A DNA stretch of 63,496 nucleotides, the filler included, from Syncephalis fuscata S228 (Eukaryota > Fungi > Zoopagomycota): assembly GCA_025786725.1 (NCBI GenBank). It is 3 parts of 3 records of this genome, joined end to end, with 100 filler letters (N's around TTAATTAATTAA, not from the genome) between each part and the next. Parts side by side here need not be neighbours in the genome. Positions count along the whole stretch, not along the records: positions 25,678 to 36,116 come from JAHLTZ010000297.1; 2 more parts are not named here. One strand, 5' to 3'. Below, piece after piece: positions 25,678 through 36,116 of this stretch. Below the pieces are notes generated by a model that did not search any database, was not told the origin of the DNA, and saw nothing but the letters and a program-made list of their open reading frames with translations. Within the stretch, counting starts at the first letter, position 1, and every line of letters starts with the position of its first letter. A program made the position numbers and the translations under genes.

Positions 25678-25849
25678 CCACCATTTACGTTCTGCCACCA
25701 CCATTTCACCGTTCTGCCACCACCATTTCACCGTTCTGCCACACCATTTCACCGTTCTGCACCATTTGCCACCATCCACCGTTCTGCCACCACCATTCAC
25801 ACGTTCTGCCACCACCATTTCACCATTTTGCCACCACCATTTTACCGTT
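25678..25849 (-). repeat. 22-bp tandem array, left copy, truncated by the contig end
   Basis: About 7 units of ATTTCACCGTTCTGCCACCACC, the reverse complement of the 33.7-kb array unit. Confidence 0.9.
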
Positions 25850-28800
25850 GAACAATTGAACGGTTGAACCGTCGGACTCACTTCCACCACTTTTGACTCC
25901 ACTCTCTTTTCATTCCTTTTAGTGAACATAAAATTAAAGTACCTGACATCTGGGTCCAAAATACCATCATCATAGATTTATTATCCAGTATGCATATATT
26001 TTTAATCCAACAATATCATTAAGATGTATCTTTACATCCTACTCTTAGTCAATGACAGGTTGAACACTTATATTTATTATGCATTTCAATCAGCTTCACT
26101 CAGTCCGCTCAGTGCGTTATAGCTTTATTATAGTTATTTTTATTATTAATAACTGTTTATTACAATTATTAACCATTTAATGTGATTTGTGTCAAATGGC
26201 TACTTTTGATATTCGCGCAACTGGCCTGCACATTTGTTCTATTGAACATGGGGACGGGTGGTGAGTTTTATTAACGATCAAATCATCACATTTGGTGTGA
26301 TTTGGTGGTTAAATGGCTATTTTGATTATTTACGCGTTTGAACTAAACATTCAACCTATTGAACATGGAGCTGGGTGGTGAGCGACATCAAAGTTTAAAA
26401 CACTTGTCATTATAGATTTATTATCCAGTATGCATATATCTCTATCTACCTACACCACTCCCTTTTATTCCGCACTTCTATGTATCATTCTACGACATAC
26501 TGGACACATTCTGTTCATTAAGCACACCAGCATACTCTACTCATTCCCTCCTTGCGTTATATGCACTATAGTTTGACATTGTTTTATATGTCATTTTACA
26601 CTCGCCCATCTATGCTCAATCCAAAACTGGTTTTATTTTTGTTCTAGCGTTATTATTAACAACTGTCGACTAATGTCGCTCATTGATCATGCATATATGC
26701 TCAGTAACTATACCACTGCTGTCCATACTTTTTACTTTGTATATTCGTTTTATTATCCAGTAAATACGCGCTAGCTATTACCGTTGTCTGTTTGGTTCTA
26801 GCACCACTATTAGAAAAGTTCACGCAAGTTGCTTATCTGCTCATGCATATATGCTCGATAGCTTTAACAAAGCTAGTTGTCTTTTAACTAGCATAGCTGA
26901 TAGCTGTTATGCTATTTTACCGTACAGTTACTATGCGCCATCAATAACTACTGTCAGCTTGACGCCAGCTTTAATATTGACAAGTTTGACTCGTTCCGCT
27001 TAGTCAGTTCCTTTCCAAGGCGCACTATAGCTTTAATGCTGCTACTCACACAATTACTTTTGGTATTTTATTTGCTCCATATTATTGTATGCTTAATGGC
27101 TATGCTTTATTTGCAGAAGCTATACGTTCCTTGTTAGCTGTTTGTTGCAAAGTTTAGCTCTGAGCACTTCTTTTACTCTTTGCACACAAACGCGCAAGTA
27201 GAATAGCCTTCTTACACTGCTAGTGCTCTTTTTGCTGTTTTCCAGTGCTGATATGTTGCAATGGTATCGAACGGGCCAGCGATGAACTGGTATAAGCTAT
27301 TATACCAAATAAAGCTTGTTATTACAAAATAGATATTCGCTATGGGTGTTATGTATACGTGCTTTAAAAGTGTCGTATAGCTTATTGCAGGGTAATCATG
27401 TATTGCGCTATAGCTACTTGAGCACAAGGACAAAGTGTACGTATATTTACCATGTGGCCGTAGACAGTGCTGGCTACTCTATTCGACACAGTTAAAAGCA
27501 ATAATAAACTTGGCCAAAAACAATTTGCTTTAAAGATTTTATTAGATGGATTGCATTAGTATTCAACATATAAGCCATTGGTATTTACTGTAGCTACAAG
27601 CTTGAAACTGGTCCCATTTAGCTGCTTTGCGTGCCGCCTAAATGATCGGCATTGTTTGAAATAAAGCCATAGCTGATATTGCCAAATAGACAGATTTACT
27701 TGCTATGCTACATGTAAAGTTTAGCATAGATCATTTTTACGCTTAGTCGGTTAAAGCCGTGTAATCTAGATTTAATCCATCAGCTTATTGCGTTGTAAAG
27801 AGCTTACCAATATTAATGTTCAGACAATATAATGACAGTAATAAAGACTGTTTTGCAATAAGTGTACAAGAAAAACACACGGTTTACTACATATTACACT
27901 AATAGTTACATGTACTGAAGATTCTACTGGAATGGTTGTAGCTGCTTATACGGAAGACTAAGAGCAATTGCGTAGTACATTGGTCATAGACGGTTTTAGA
28001 CGACTCATGTTTTATTACGACATTTTCCACAACTATCACAATACATAAGCTGGCTTTACCGCTCCTCCGAACCAACACTGCACCTTTATCTTCTCTTTCT
28101 ACTCTTTACCACTCGATATACACTACACTCATTCGCCCTTACTGCCATTTGTTGTCCAATATGCTTTGCACTTGCTAGCCGTCTAATGATTACAAGATCA
28201 CTGCTGGTTGCTGCTATATGTACTAAGGTCGGTAAACGGGCGTGGGAGGTGCGATGCAGTTGTGCCTTTTGGCTATGAAGCACTGGATATGCAGTGTTCT
28301 AGAAGCTATATATCACGCAGTGTGTACCCCAGCATGCTGTAGAAGGCGCTTGTCTGCACATAGTTGATTGGTCTTTTGTATAGTAACATTGGTACGCTTA
28401 CCGTGTGTTTGTTTGCGAGGTTGCCTTGCTGAGTATCTGGCTGTTGAGGCGACATAAGGTTTGCGCTTGAAGATATCTGATATCTGATGGTGCAGAGCAA
28501 ATGTTGTTTGGACAACCACTACTTATTGCGGTGTAGTCAAGCAGCAAACATCATTGGCACATGTGGCTCATCTCGTTTACTGACCCTCTTCAATAGATAT
28601 AGATTTAAGCGATATTTAGATTTGGCAAGAACAGGGCCACAATATGCTGTACAGTCATCCGGTTTGTACTAGTCTATCATTATTTATGTATTTCTTTGTT
28701 TAAATAAATAAATGTAGCATTTCTTATTTATTAACATACTACTATTAGTTGCGTTCATATAAATACAGACATCTTCCCATTTAATAATAGTACTAGTTGT

Positions 28801-29087
28801 TTCTGCTATTGTTATTACACTGATAATAAACAACCTATTAAGCCATTGAATGTGCTTTGAAGGCAAACGATTAAATTTGATGCATCCATGCAGTTGAGCT
28901 AGACAATTGCTCTGTTGAACATAATAACGAGCGGTGAGTGAATCAAAGTTTAAAATATTTATTGGCATAGATGTATTATCCAGTACGCTTATATCCAACA
29001 TTTACTTGTATCATTCGTCTATTATCGCATACTATTATGTATTATTCTACAATACACTAGCCGCATTCTGGTTATTGTATGCGGCAA
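25850..29087. repeat. Left arm of ~3.2-kb near-perfect inverted repeat
   Basis: Reverse complement of 30416-33644. Mirrored ORF pairs in the track (27212-27433/32067-32288, 28086-28283/31219-31416, 28487-28672/30830-31015) are identical or differ by 1 aa. Confidence 0.95.
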
Positions 29088-30415
29088 TATACTTTGCTCA
29101 TTACGCTATATACACTGTTTGACACTGCTTTTATGTTTTTTACCGTACATTTGCTATTCTACATATCATTTTATTATCGTCCATCCTTCATCTATCCAAC
29201 CATATTTATTTTTGCACTAGCTTTATTATTAATAAAATTAAACTATTTTGCTCATGCACATCCACGCTGTTTAACCTTCTGGTAGACAAACCAGCTGTTG
29301 TCAATTAGCAATGGCTTTGGTGCTGATCAACGGAACAATGCGTATTCACAGCAATGGCAAGGCCAACCGGAAATGGTGCAATGGTTGGCTCACAGCTTTA
29401 AACCTTGGGTTTATCTCAACTTAGCTTTTGATGCTGTTATATATTCATATCAAAAAGTGGGACTGTTGGGAAGGTACTGAGCGATATACAGTGTGGACTG
29501 AGGCCAACATAAGTGAAATGGAGCAAGTATGGTGTGCAGTGCACTATTACATAGACAAATACGTAGAAGCAACGCAGGGAAGCAAGTGATGCGTAAACTA
29601 CGTAAAACTACGTAAAATAAACAAAATACAGTAGCTGAAATACAAGTAATGACCTGCGAGGACCATACTAAGCGGCCCTTAGCTGAAATGGCTACAGTGG
29701 CTACAGTGGCTGCACTAGAATAGGCTGAATTGATAGCTAATAGCCAATATACCATACACTGATCAATGCACTATCATAATAAACAAACTACATCAGTAAA
29801 TAAACAAATTTATCTGTATACTTATTATTTATACCAATATTTAACCAATATTACTCTGATATGCATGTACAATTCTGGATAAAATACTAAGTATTTGCAC
29901 ATCTCATTTTATTGGCTTAGTATGGCCATAATTGTCGTTTGAGTAGGCAGAATCAATTGGACTGCAGTATATTTTTAGTTAATTTACTGTTAATTTTCTA
30001 GTATGTCTAATTGTAACCGTGTAACATGGGCATTAGCAAAATGAGTGTAATAAGTGGCCAACTTTAAAGATAAAGCTAGGGTAAAATGGACAACGCCAAT
30101 CGATGTAGTGTGGCCAATATACTGTATAACAATATATAACAACACTCTATAAATATAAAGTATATAATATTTATGTCAAATCTACAGTACTAAAGCTACA
30201 GTGTACCAATATGGCCATTCAAGCGCCCGCACAAATGGTGTTAATGCTACAGCGCCTTTCCGATGCCAAAAGCGCTAAAACATAAAAGAGCACTTATTTA
30301 ATAATAGATCTGGAATCAAAACAACAATGGCGTTGCATAGCTCTTATGCGTTATACAATAAACAGCATACAATTTAGTGAATGTACAGCGTAATAGTTGG
30401 GATGAGTGAGGTGTG
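29088..30415. other. 1.33-kb non-palindromic central spacer
   Basis: Mirror identity stops at ...TATGCGGCAA (29087) and TTGCCGCATA... (30416). The spacer has no credible ORF and contains diverged family-F sequence. Confidence 0.85.
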
Positions 30416-33400
30416 TTGCCGCATACAATAACCAGAATGCGGCTAGTGTATTGTAGAATAATACATAATAGTATGCGATAATAGACGAATGATACAAGTA
30501 AATGTTGGATATAAGCGTACTGGATAATACATCTATGCCAATAAATATTTTAAACTTTGATTCACCACCGCTCGTTATTATGTTCAACAGAGCAATTGTC
30601 TAGCTCAACTGCATGGATGCATCAAATTTAATCGTTTGCCTTCAAAGCACATTCAATGGCTTAATAGGTTGTTTATTATCAGTGTAATAACAATAGCAGA
30701 AACAACTAGTACTATTATTAAATGGGAAGATGTCTGTATTTATATGAACGCAACTAATAGTAGTATGTTAATAAATAAGAAATGCTACATTTATTTATTT
30801 AAACAAAGAAATACATAAATAATGATAGACTAGTACAAACCGGATGACTGTACAGCATATTGTGGCCCTGTTCTTGCCAAATCTAAATATCGCTTAAATC
30901 TATATCTATTGAAGAGGGTCAGTAAACGAGATGAGCCACATGTGCCAATGATGTTTGCTGCTTGACTACACCGCAATAAGTAGTGGTTGTCCAAACAACA
31001 TTTGCTCTGCACCATCAGATATCAGATATCTTCAAGCGCAAACCTTATGTCGCCTCAACAGCCAGATACTCAGCAAGGCAACCTCGCAAACAAACACACG
31101 GTAAGCGTACCAATGTTACTATACAAAAGACCAATCAACTATGTGCAGACAAGCGCCTTCTACAGCATGCTGGGGTACACACTGCGTGATATATAGCTTC
31201 TAGAACACTGCATATCCAGTGCTTCATAGCCAAAAGGCACAACTGCATCGCACCTCCCACGCCCGTTTACCGACCTTAGTACATATAACAGCAACCAGCA
31301 GTGATCTTGTAATCATTAGACGGCTAGCAAGTGCAAAGCATATTGGACAACAAATGGCAGTAAGGGCGAATGAGTGTAGCGTATATCGAGTGGTAAAGAG
31401 TAGAAAGAGAAGATAAAGGTGCAATGTTGGTTCGGAGGAGCGGTAAAGCCAGCTTATGTATTGTGATAGTTGTGGAAAATGTCGTAATAAAACATGAGTC
31501 GTCTAAAACCGTCTATGACCAATGTACTACGCAATTGCTCTTAGTCTTCCGTATAAGCAGCTACAACCATTCCAGTAGAATCTTCAGTACATGTAACTAT
31601 TAGTGTAATATGTAGTAAACCGTGTGTTTTTTTGTACACTTATTGCAAAACAGTCTTTATTGCTGTCATTATATTGTCTGAACATTAATATTGGTAAGCT
31701 CTTTACAACGCAATAAGCTGATGGATTAAATCTAGATTACACGGCTTAACCGACTAAGCGTAAAAATGATCTATGCTAAACTTTACATGTAGCATAGCAA
31801 GTAAATCTGTCTATTTGGCAATACCAGCTATGGCTTTATTTCAAACAATGCCGATCATTTAGGCGGCACGCAAAGCAGCTAAATGGGACCAGTTTCAAGC
31901 TTGTAGCTACAGTAAATACCAATGGCTTATATGTTGAATACTAATGCAATCCATCTAATAAAATCTTTAAAGCAAATTGTTTTTGGCCAAGTTTATTATT
32001 GCTTTTAACTGTGTCGAATAGAGTAGCCAGCACTGTCTACGGCCACATGGTAAATATACGTACACTTTGTCCTTGTGCTCAAGTAGCTATAGCGCAATAC
32101 ATGATTACCCTGCAATAAGCTATACGACACTTTTAAAGCTCGTATACATAACACCCATAGCGAATATCTATTTTGTAATAACAAGCTTTATTTGGTATAA
32201 TAGCTTATACCAGTTCATCGCTGGCCCGTTCGATACCATTGCAACATATCAGCACTGGAAAACAGCAAAAAGAGCACTAGCAGTGTAAGAAGGCTATTCT
32301 ACTTGCGCGTTTGTGTGCAAAGAGTAAAAGAAGTGCTCAGAGCTAAATTTGCAACAAACAGCTAACAAGGAACGTATAGCTTCTGCAAATAAAGCATAGC
32401 CATTAAGCATACAATAATATGGAGCAAATAAAATACCAAAAGTAATTGTGTGAGTAGCAGCATTAAAGCTATAGTGCGCCTTGAGAAGGAATGACTAAGC
32501 GGAACGAGTCAAACTTGTCAATATTAAAGCTGGCGTCAAGCTGACAGTAGTTATTGATGGCGCATAGTAACTGTACGGTAAAATAGCATAACAGCTATCA
32601 GCTATGCTAGTTAAAAGACAACTAGCTTTGTTAAAGCTATCGAGCATATATGCATGAGCAGATAAGCAACTTGCGTGAACTTTTCTAATAATGGTGCTAG
32701 AACCAAACAGACAACGGTAATAGCTAGCGCGTATTTACTGGATAATAAAACGAATATACAAAGTAAAAAGTATGGACAGCAGTGGTATAGCTACTGAGCA
32801 TATATGCATGATCAATGAGCGACATTAGTCGACAGTTGTTAATAATAACGCTAGAACAAAAATAAAACCAGTTTTGGATTGAGCATAGATGGGCGAGTGT
32901 AAAATGACATATAAAACGATGTCAAACTATAGTGCATATAACGCAAGGAGGGAATGAGTGTGCTGGTGTGCTTAATGAACAGAATGTGTCCAGTATGTCG
33001 TAGAATGATACATAGAAGTGCGGAATAAAAGGGAGTGGTGTAGGTAGATAGAGATATATGCATACTGGATAATAAATCTATAATGACAAGTGTTTTAAAC
33101 TTTGATGTCGCTCACCACCCAGCTCCATGTTCAATAGGTTGAATGTTTAGTTCAAACGCGTAAATAATCAAAATAGCCATTTAACCACCAAATCACACCA
33201 AATGTGATGATTTGATCGTTAATAAAACTCACCACCCGTCCCCATGTTCAATAGAACAAATGTGCAGGCCAGTTGCGCGAATATCAAAAGTAGCCGTTTG
33301 ACACAAATCACATTAAATGGTTAATAATTGTAATAAACAGTTATAATAATAAAAAATAACTATAATAAAGCTATAACGCACTGAGCGGACTGAGTGAAGC

Positions 33401-33644
33401 TGATTGAAATGCATAATAAATATAAGTGTTCAACCTGTCATTGACTAAGAGTAGGATGTAAAGATACATCTTAATGATATTGTTGGATTAAAAATATATG
33501 CATACTGGATAATAAATCTATGATGATGGTATTTTGGACCCAGATGTCAGGTACTTTAATTTTATGTTCACTAAAAGGAATGAAAAGAGAGTGGAGTCAA
33601 AAGTGGTGGAAGTGAGTCCGACGGTTCAACCGTTCAATTGTTCA
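30416..33644. repeat. Right arm of ~3.2-kb near-perfect inverted repeat
   Basis: Reverse complement of 25850-29087 with a few substitutions and indels (e.g. near 30563, 31287, 32140, 32484, and a 5-bp indel near 32960). Confidence 0.95.
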
Positions 33645-34113
33645 ACGGTAAATGGTGGTGGCAAAATGGTGAAATGGTGGTGGCAGAACGGTGAAATGGT
33701 GATGGCAGAACGGTGAAATGGTGGTGGCAGAACGCTAAAATGGTGGTGGCAGAACGGTGAAATGGTGGTGGCAGAACGCTAAAATGGTGGTGGCAGAACG
33801 GTGACTGAGGTGGCAGAACGGTGAAATGGTGGTGGTAGAACGGTGAAATGGTGATGGCAGAACGGTGGAATGGTGGTGGCAGAACGCTAAAATGGTGGTG
33901 GCAGAACGGTGGACTGATGGTGGCAGAACGGTGAAATGATGATGGCAGAACGGTGAAATGGTGGTGCAGAACGCTAAAATGGTGGTGGCAGAACGGTGGA
34001 CTGATGGTGCAGAACGGTGAAATGGTGGTGGCAGAACAGCGGTATTCCACCATCTCACCGTTTTGCCAGTTCACCGTCCTGCCACTACCATTCTGCCATT
34101 CCGCCATTCTGCC
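33645..34113 (+). repeat. 22-bp tandem array (~17.5 units) followed by short inverted degenerate units
   Basis: GGTGGTGGCAGAACGGTGAAAT with variants (..GCTAAAAT, ..GGTGGACT) from 33654 to 34037; C-strand units CCACCATCTCACCGTTTTGCC etc. at 34047-34113. Confidence 0.93.
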
Positions 34114-34559
34114 TTGACAGTCTCTGACTATCGACTATCAGTCTACATTTAAAGCATTTGCCGTTTCTTTGAAGCTACAGGTAAGCATTGTTATGTTTTA
34201 TTAAATATGTATTATTGTGCGGACAAAGACGGTGTAGCACAAATAGCCATGTACGCTTTTATAATCGGCTGTTTACTATGGTAAGACAACTGGCGCTGCT
34301 ATGTAATAAATACTTGCTTATTTTTACTTCAAACTACTTACCATTTAATCAACTGTTATTTTTACATAGATTTTAGGTATGCAGTGTTAGTGTTGCTGTT
34401 TGCATTCATGCACTGTGTTTTGTTTTCAAATAATACTAGCTTTTAACAAGATCACAAGCCTTCTTCCTTGCCGTGTTATAATATGGAATAATATAGATTC
34501 AAATGAATGGTCAAATAAAGTGTAAAATAATGGCAATAAAGGTATAGTATGCGTATTGC

Positions 34560-35000
34560 ACAAGCAATCAAGTAAAATATACAAACAATACGGCGAGTAA
34601 CAAATAAACGAGTTTTATCAATAAGACATGATGAGTATAGTTTAGAATAGAATCAATGGATAAAATAATAGTGAAGATATACATAGACGATTAAGTAAGT
34701 ACAATAAATTGAACCTATAGCAATAAAGCTAGCGGCAATAAAATACCTGCTGTAAATGGGTTGTGCTTATTATATGATCGATCGATATATGACTTAATAA
34801 ATACAGAATAGTAATGATATGGGTGGATAGAAGGCATATGCATACTAAATACTAAATCTATAATGACGAGTATTTTAATGGCTAATGCCATCCACCACAC
34901 AGTTTCATGCCCAATAGATTGGATGTTGTTAAATTTAGCCATTTATCTTTCAAATCATACTAGATCATCAGCAAATTGTTTAATATTATTATACTAGGCT
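34560..35000 (+). repeat. Dispersed family F copy
   Basis: 34805-34980 aligns with 15770-15965 (GAATAGTAATGATATGGGTGGATA...CATACTAAATACTAAA.CTATAAT) and with 33057-33190. Confidence 0.65.
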
Positions 35001-36116
35001 TAACACAATCAAACCAATCAAACGAACCACTATTGCTATTATTAAAATGACCAGTGTGGGTGTAGCTTTATAGAATGTAACTATTTTTAGTATACTAGCA
35101 GTATAGTACAATTCAAATAATTGAATGGCATAACAAAGCTACTAGACACTATACTAATGTTGATTTATAGCATATTTATTTAGTTAAAGGATGCTAAATG
35201 TTAAAGCGTTTATAAAAAAGTAGCTGTATTTGCTACTACCTATAATCAGGTTAGGCATGGCATTACAATGGGAATCAGCACTATGATATAAGCATCATGT
35301 CAAATAGTTGACCTCCATATACACACACATTCAACGATACAAGAAGGCAACAGCAATGGCAATGTATATAGCGAGTATAAGTACGACAACCACCGCTCGT
35401 TATAGTTGCAATGTTGGTGGTAATATTCAACTGACATCAGCGGCGATCAATGTCAATACACGCCAGCAAGCTGCACATATTAGCTACTGTATTAATAAGC
35501 AGTATAGTTAAGCAACATACAGCAGCATACAGCAGCATACAGCTGTTGAAACGCATGTTAGTACGCATGCAACACCAGCGATTGATTCTATGCTATAATT
35601 ACAAAATAAATAGTAGCGTCATTATGGTTGATTGTAATCAAAATACGTGCCGACGGCCAATATATATTAAATATTGTTAATATTTAATGCTAATATTGCC
35701 ATTTCTATTTGTGGTGCCTTTTCACGATTTTTCCAACATATGTCAGTTATATGCGCCAATGCGTCAACGCCATGCGGTTATAGTAGATGCTATTACGTAT
35801 TTCTAGCTGTATGATTGATAGAATCAAGAATTGGTAAAGTTAATTAATAAAGGCTATAATAGTCCTTTTTTTGTTATTTTGACAATAAAAGCCCACACAA
35901 ATACTAATTAAAAAATGTATCGATTGCTTAATAGATAGCCAATTGCAACTTGACAGTATCAATCCCTGTAGCCATAATTGACCGTTAACAATTGCCGTCG
36001 ATTTGCTAGTTATGTCGGCCAACCAACAGCGTCGGTGACATGATATAATTAATAAATATATTAATGATTGGTATTGCATATAGCTACAGTATGTGTGTAA
36101 TAGCACAATAGCACGC

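Follow-up and report, generated by a model that had tools for sequence, protein, structure and literature searches.

What kind of element is a nearly perfect palindrome that occupies most of one piece of the genome of the fungus Syncephalis fuscata S228? The window analyzed here is a 63,496-nucleotide stretch of this genome (assembly GCA_025786725.1, three joined parts with filler between them), and the piece in question, 25678-36116 (JAHLTZ010000297.1), holds a left arm, a spacer and an inverted right arm with a 22-bp array at each outer side (Table 1). Aligned to each other, the arms are identical in 3215 of 3227 columns (99.6% of aligned columns); they differ by 12 substitutions, 11 of them transitions, and by 8 indel events. 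A preliminary description had called the palindrome gene-free and about 8.4 kb long. That size stands as a minimum only: because the left array is cut by the edge of the piece, 8.4 kb is a lower bound and the symmetry may extend further, the 22-bp arrays being the outer limit of the symmetry known. "Gene-free" holds for proteins (the longest ORF outside the 22-bp arrays is 105 aa, and we found no relatives) but fails for RNA, since the arms are transcribed and spliced.

Table 1. Features of the palindromic locus, in coordinates of the window
Feature	Position	Strand	Size, basis or remark
Left 22-bp array	25678-25849	-	7.7 units, unit AACGGTGAAATGGTGGTGGCAG on minus strand; edge-cut, indel-noisy
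Left arm	25850-29087	+	3238 bp
Outer-arm copies of old high-copy dispersed sub-repeat	25911-26700	+	Self-comparison, run depth
Abundant inward RNA, left copy	28090-28640 (ends approximate, from contig positions)	+	X4 depth; strand deduced
Intron-like segment, 369 nt GT-AG	28228-28596 (right copy 30906-31274, minus)	+	Splice join and folding
Rod hairpin, ~57 bp	28406-28550	+	Mean pair probability 0.92
Inner sub-repeat copy	28820-29260	+	Runs across arm-spacer boundary
Spacer	29088-30415		1328 bp; unique, poorly transcribed
Right arm, inverted copy	30416-33643	-	3228 bp
Abundant inward RNA, right copy	30861-31410	-	X4's deepest contigs
Outward non-coding transcript region	31420-33081 (limits approximate)	+	X4 contig depth 260-355
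Outward-transcript intron, 99 nt GT-AG	31694-31792 (left copy 27708-27807, minus)	+	X4 joint 31692-31792, depth 234
Right 22-bp array	33644-34037	+	18 units; recurring variant units; ~152-bp higher-order period
Short degenerate inverted array	34045-34113	-	Pairs back onto right array's end
Flank sub-repeat copy	34762-35095	-	74% over ~200 nt

Public sequencing runs confirm that both arms exist. Of the words in 29102-33600, 57-74% occur in five runs from one organism (two samples, two studies) and 5-6% in two soil metagenomes. Run X8 (2019, same species label) contains none of these words; it may come from a distant strain or carry a wrong label, or the element may be specific to certain strains. 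We aligned contigs from four runs to 29030-33630; X1 and X2 are DNA, whereas X4, from the other study, is probably RNA (a software guess as to its nature, and it behaves like RNA). In X2, a spacer contig (29600-30445, depth 9.7) ends exactly 30 letters inside the right arm, and its neighbor runs from 30416 onward at depth 18.6, double that of the spacer; such a fork with doubled depth is the behavior of a two-entry repeat in a 31-mer graph. X4 contigs cross both arm-spacer junctions (29047-29614 and 29743-30456), with the arm boundary 11 nt further out than in the window and X2 because 29077-29078 differ. Depth in the DNA runs is flat, at 8-10 in the spacer and 16-33 in the arms, so that the arms stand at about twice the spacer.

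The scattered differences between the arms, which the preliminary description had taken as a sign of two real copies, are genuine in part. At 31380, 32691, 32955 and 33296 both arm alleles occur within one sample, and these differences are therefore real, whereas 30565 and 32347 show the left-arm letter alone in all three runs of the organism, and the single-base gaps of the right arm there are probably consensus errors. The runs also hold variants present in neither arm and so stem from another strain or from additional copies. An assembly or amplification artefact would suit the noisy left end and those right-arm deletions that resemble consensus errors, but it is made extremely unlikely by the junctions in X4, by the X2 graph forking exactly at 30416 with doubled depth and by the presence of both arm alleles in a single sample. 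Independent runs from two studies hold the junctions, as two real copies would predict; the one-armed outcome of a multiple displacement amplification chimera or a misassembly did not appear.

The arms are not silent. X4 contigs reach depths of 12.8 and 8.7 in the spacer (9-13), 236-355 in the arms and 3340 over the core contig 31100-31304, figures from which we read no more than a difference of two to three orders of magnitude, contig depth being a poor measure of expression and X4 contigs carrying no strand, transcript ends or true level. This deep core region is unique within the piece and has a GC content of 44-47% versus 31-36% in the remaining arm. Splice joins occur only in X4 and not in the DNA runs. 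Each strand has one spliced GT-AG intron, and the evidence for either is thin: the outward 99-nt join is present in a single X4 contig, and the inward 369-nt join is the 15-letter loose end of a single X4 contig at 30907, which equals the join to 31275. The ends of the inward segment are canonical (GT, branch motif TACTGAC, AG). With one spliced intron per strand, each arm is read both inward and outward, and the relaxed branch motifs suggest a nuclear eukaryotic locus, perhaps a fungus-like one.

Several further observations concern RNA processing. At 31695 (27806 in the left arm), a T>C change in the runs turns the GT donor of the outward intron into GC; X2 holds both alleles (26/58), and the unspliced X4 contig has C alone. 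Given this donor variation, splicing may differ between copies. X4 contigs also exit at 31296 and 32981 into at least 255 unrelated letters, both breaks lying at a minus-strand GT and perhaps reflecting splicing in related loci. Spliced-leader trans-splicing finds no support, as just 4% of aligned X4 contigs continue into unrelated sequence, and the thin coverage of the spacer makes it unlikely that the main product is a giant hairpin RNA joining the two arms.

Such transcription bears directly on the proposal, made in the preliminary description, of an inverted-repeat regional centromere like those of Komagataella phaffii and Candida tropicalis or the imr-cnt arrangement of Schizosaccharomyces pombe. 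Near-identical kilobase-scale inverted repeats do surround a unique core, and in having 2-3-kb arms and a core of about 1 kb the locus resembles the K. phaffii and C. tropicalis centromeres (PMC5010909). Its sizes are similar to the 2.0-2.7 kb of K. phaffii centromere repeats, its spacer is poorly transcribed, and C. tropicalis centromeres are homogenized from chromosome to chromosome (PMC5010909). However, each K. phaffii chromosome has a single non-transcribed region, which is where its centromere lies, and the centromeres of both yeasts are cold spots without outer repeats (PMC5010909), whereas the arms here are minisatellite-capped and strongly transcribed. Arms and core are no transcription cold spot (X4 depth 236-3340 in the arms versus 9-13 in the spacer), the arm contigs being 20-350 times deeper than the spacer and containing spliced RNAs. 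In addition, the spacer assembles into unbranched contigs with 0-2 letter differences from the window, whereas the cores of those centromeres vary between chromosomes. Because the arms are so heavily transcribed, the centromere proposal is weakened, and we regard it as highly improbable.

Our best reading is that the main feature of the locus is an abundant structured RNA in each arm, whose strand we infer from folding and from the splice join. Compared with shuffles, the 369-nt segment folds unusually well on the inward strand (z -3.39, 0/100) and not on the opposite strand (z +0.33), and a folding scan of about 120 windows gave its best score, z -4.2, at the core segment. The predicted closing helix has 18 pairs starting from the first base of the intron and joins the 5' splice site to the branch motif TACTGAC at 28578-28584; its first 11 pairs have probabilities of 0.99 or more, and its 4 G-U pairs can form on the inward strand only. 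As no homologue was found and covariation is consequently lacking, the core RNA structure is a prediction. Two spacer windows, 29525-29675 and 29900-30050, also fold better than shuffles (z about -3.3), with no Rfam match.

We searched for relatives of this RNA. Rfam covariance models gave only chance-level matches far under gathering scores, and SRP, RNase P/MRP, snRNA, snoRNA and miRNA were set aside with no Rfam match above the gathering score; resemblances to RNase P/MRP, SRP and U2 were not borne out by cmscan. The 12-mer GCCTTTTGGCTA at 28264-28275 is identical to a part of U2 snRNA stem I, which may be chance, as cmscan gave no U2 match. The start of the folded RNA had no exact-pattern match in viral or prokaryote genomes. 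A telomerase RNA was rejected for want of a template, since the arm matches the 22-bp unit over 7 nt at most, and neither TTAGGG nor its complement was found. An Rfam search of 25678-36116 found no rRNA genes, and a scan with ARAGORN for tRNA-type genes was blank. Stable intronic RNAs, introner-like elements and snoRNA host genes combine a structured GT-AG intron with a host that has no ORF. The locus is like them in both respects but unlike them in having no C/D boxes or Rfam match and a 5' splice site fully paired with the branch site, and DNA depth indicates no dispersed extra copies of the 369-nt intron.

Coding capacity appears negligible. None of ten ORFs matched Pfam above cut-off, two core ORFs had no homologue in protein searches (which used unspliced ORFs and detect only kin of similar length), and alternative genetic codes gave no convincing ORF. 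Could the abundant RNA nevertheless be the mRNA of a micro-protein, made by splicing to another acceptor, at 28495, that has a CTGAT branch motif? A 14-codon first exon would then be joined in frame to an ORF that stops at 28672, for a product of 72 aa including 5 cysteines, and X4 depth over 30878-31031 exceeds that over 31032-31185, as such a splice would give. Yet the X4 joins include no joint of the 28227-28496 type, the rod hairpin covers the acceptor, depth drops ahead of the stop codon, no relative of the exon-2 ORF was found and the observed join yields an inward product that encodes 15 aa only. We therefore consider a micro-protein very unlikely.

The setting of the arms suggests how the palindrome arose. 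The outer arm, the inner arm end, the spacer start and the flank share a sub-repeat at about 70-76% identity. The left ~170 nt of the spacer continue this sub-repeat and its right end does so weakly (0/300 and 12/300 shuffles, respectively, reach the score); the homology between flank and outer arm, 1.3 kb at first, comes to ~200 nt when scored more strictly. The point where arm identity ends sharply lies inside this older sub-repeat homology, which fits an origin at a pre-existing inverted pair followed by arm-to-arm conversion. Template-switch models form palindromes at inverted pairs, where spacers are much shorter (PMC10766183). In mammalian sex-chromosome palindromes (PMC3723533, PMC8327919), arms of more than 99% identity likewise flank a spacer and gene conversion is the likely cause, but those palindromes are far larger and carry protein-coding gene families.

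The sub-repeat itself is widespread: its summed depth in the DNA runs is more than 100 times that of the spacer, so the family must be abundant elsewhere. Summed DNA depth rises to 1200-2200, versus 9, at 33053-33340, 33490-33530, near 30105 and at 29200-29330. Inside the outer arm the family has periods of ~115 and 154 bp, and its motif had no exact-pattern match in metagenomes. The piece as a whole has an unusual dinucleotide signature (GpC odds 1.6-1.95, GA/TC 0.56-0.71, TA >1). CpA/TpG depletion of the RIP type is absent, and the CA/TG odds of 1.25 and substrate index of 1.2 rule against a RIP-mutated fungal repeat.

Copy number was estimated from the DNA runs. X1 and X2 comprise 82,000-104,000 records averaging 48 letters and 1.5-1.9 million solid 31-mers, versus 14.8 million in X4. 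For a genome of 10-60 Mb the expected typical depth in X1 and X2 is 0.2-0.8, whereas spacer contigs stand at 8-10, a 12- to 35-fold excess found in long clean contigs. If the libraries are unbiased, this suggests roughly 12-35 near-identical copies, an estimate that assumes even DNA sampling and that an enriched or amplified library would mimic. X1 and X2 also hold one contig each that is 86% identical to 30268-30451, at the depth of the spacer (about 9). It is an older relative of the locus elsewhere, and its matching depth means that the over-represented unit may exceed the piece.

Many near-identical copies would also be expected of a non-autonomous giant foldback DNA transposon that multiplied recently, in which case the RNA would be transposon-derived. 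In its architecture this idea, raised in the preliminary description, fits: foldback elements consist of outer repeats, an inner domain and a non-coding middle (PMC4079207), and the layout here matches that plan, with long inverted repeats, an outer tandem-repeat domain and a non-coding middle as in Drosophila FB, Tetris and Galileo (PMC4079207). The arms here, however, are about twice the longest Tetris repeats (1,735 bp), and the right end is blurred by the old inverted array. Unlike in those elements, the arm ends are built of a sub-repeat also present in spacer and flank, so that the unit is not self-contained, and the interior yields an abundant structured RNA; passive transposon DNA would not be expected to give strand-specific RNA folding or such deep RNA contigs. 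Foldback elements lie at dispersed sites between 8-10-bp target-site duplications, and here the left end is cut by the edge of the piece. We hold a foldback origin to be the likeliest rival of our reading, at a low probability.

The 22-bp arrays bear on whether the locus caps a chromosome or a linear amplicon. As first described, the G-rich strand points outward in both arrays, and the arrays agree in their first two units and then differ. The left array has its C-rich strand at the 5' end, the orientation of a left chromosome end, and the right array is followed in the assembly by 2 kb of other DNA. The right-array end and an old inverted copy form a long hairpin at ~33957-34105 (DNA z -7.3), and the hairpin over 33957-34113 resembles a head-to-head end fusion or a fold-back. 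The array unit had no exact-pattern match in viral or metagenome contigs.

One could picture a chromosome-end element or a linear extrachromosomal amplicon with the 22-bp arrays as telomeres, the right array having become internal by fusion or integration. The piece starts in the C-rich strand of an array, G-rich repeats point outward on both arms, the right array runs into a short inverted array as if two ends had fused head to head, and 12-35 copies could be one per chromosome end. There are precedents: the ends of the Dictyostelium discoideum rDNA palindrome occur at chromosome ends (PMC6759168), and Rhynchosciara chromosome ends carry 22-bp tandem repeats (PMC7694509), compared with the array here by unit length alone. 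On the other hand, tandem arrays of every kind are common break points of assemblies, the units differ from one another by substitutions, as most telomerase products do not, G4Hunter scores of the array are low (mean 0.62), the motif was not found in literature text or in small TeloBase supplements, and the core RNA has no template for it. Taken together, we find telomeric capping rather improbable.

The palindromic amplicon proposed earlier is compatible with the locus and favored by the copy-number estimate, but the piece has no rRNA genes. The D. discoideum extrachromosomal rDNA palindrome, ~85 kb long and present in ~100 copies (PMC6759168), shares with the locus a mirror pair of non-coding RNA units, probably many copies and outward G-rich repeats; the locus differs in its lack of rRNA, its far shorter length and its spliced transcripts pointing both ways. 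By analogy, it may work most like an rDNA palindrome, with mirror RNA units in many copies and no rRNA.

The explanation that we favor, with about even confidence, is that a non-coding transcription unit was duplicated naturally as a palindrome, which probably exists in many near-identical copies; the runs show the two arms and the two junctions, as well as transcription and splicing on either strand. The palindrome would have arisen via fold-back or template switching at an older inverted sub-repeat pair, and arm-to-arm recombination would keep the arms alike. In each arm, a divergent RNA polymerase II promoter near 28080/31420 would yield two RNAs, an abundant inward one of ~0.5 kb that includes the 369-nt folded domain and a weaker outward one of ~1.7 kb that is spliced. 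The closing helix is predicted to hide the 5' splice site and the branch site, and we propose that the inward RNA consequently stays mostly unspliced or that the released intron persists, the latter as a closed, stable RNA. The folded RNA would be the likely product, its dose raised and preserved by duplication and amplification as rDNA palindromes do for rRNA. Its role as a product is a prediction of this model, and the core RNA could be a by-product of repeat transcription. A bolder version, to which we give little credence, is a palindromic mini-chromosome or chromosome-end cassette in multiple copies, with the 22-bp arrays as caps, that amplifies an undescribed, splicing-blocked RNA in the style of rDNA without rRNA.

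Overall, a duplicated non-coding RNA gene, probably in multiple copies, describes the locus better than a centromere does. The recombination-kept palindromes with which we compared it carry rRNA genes, protein genes, centromeres or transposon ends, whereas this one seems to carry an abundant structured RNA of no known family. Should this be confirmed, a little-studied soil eukaryote would yield a new non-coding RNA, a simple means of preventing splicing and, possibly, a novel type of amplified element or chromosome end.
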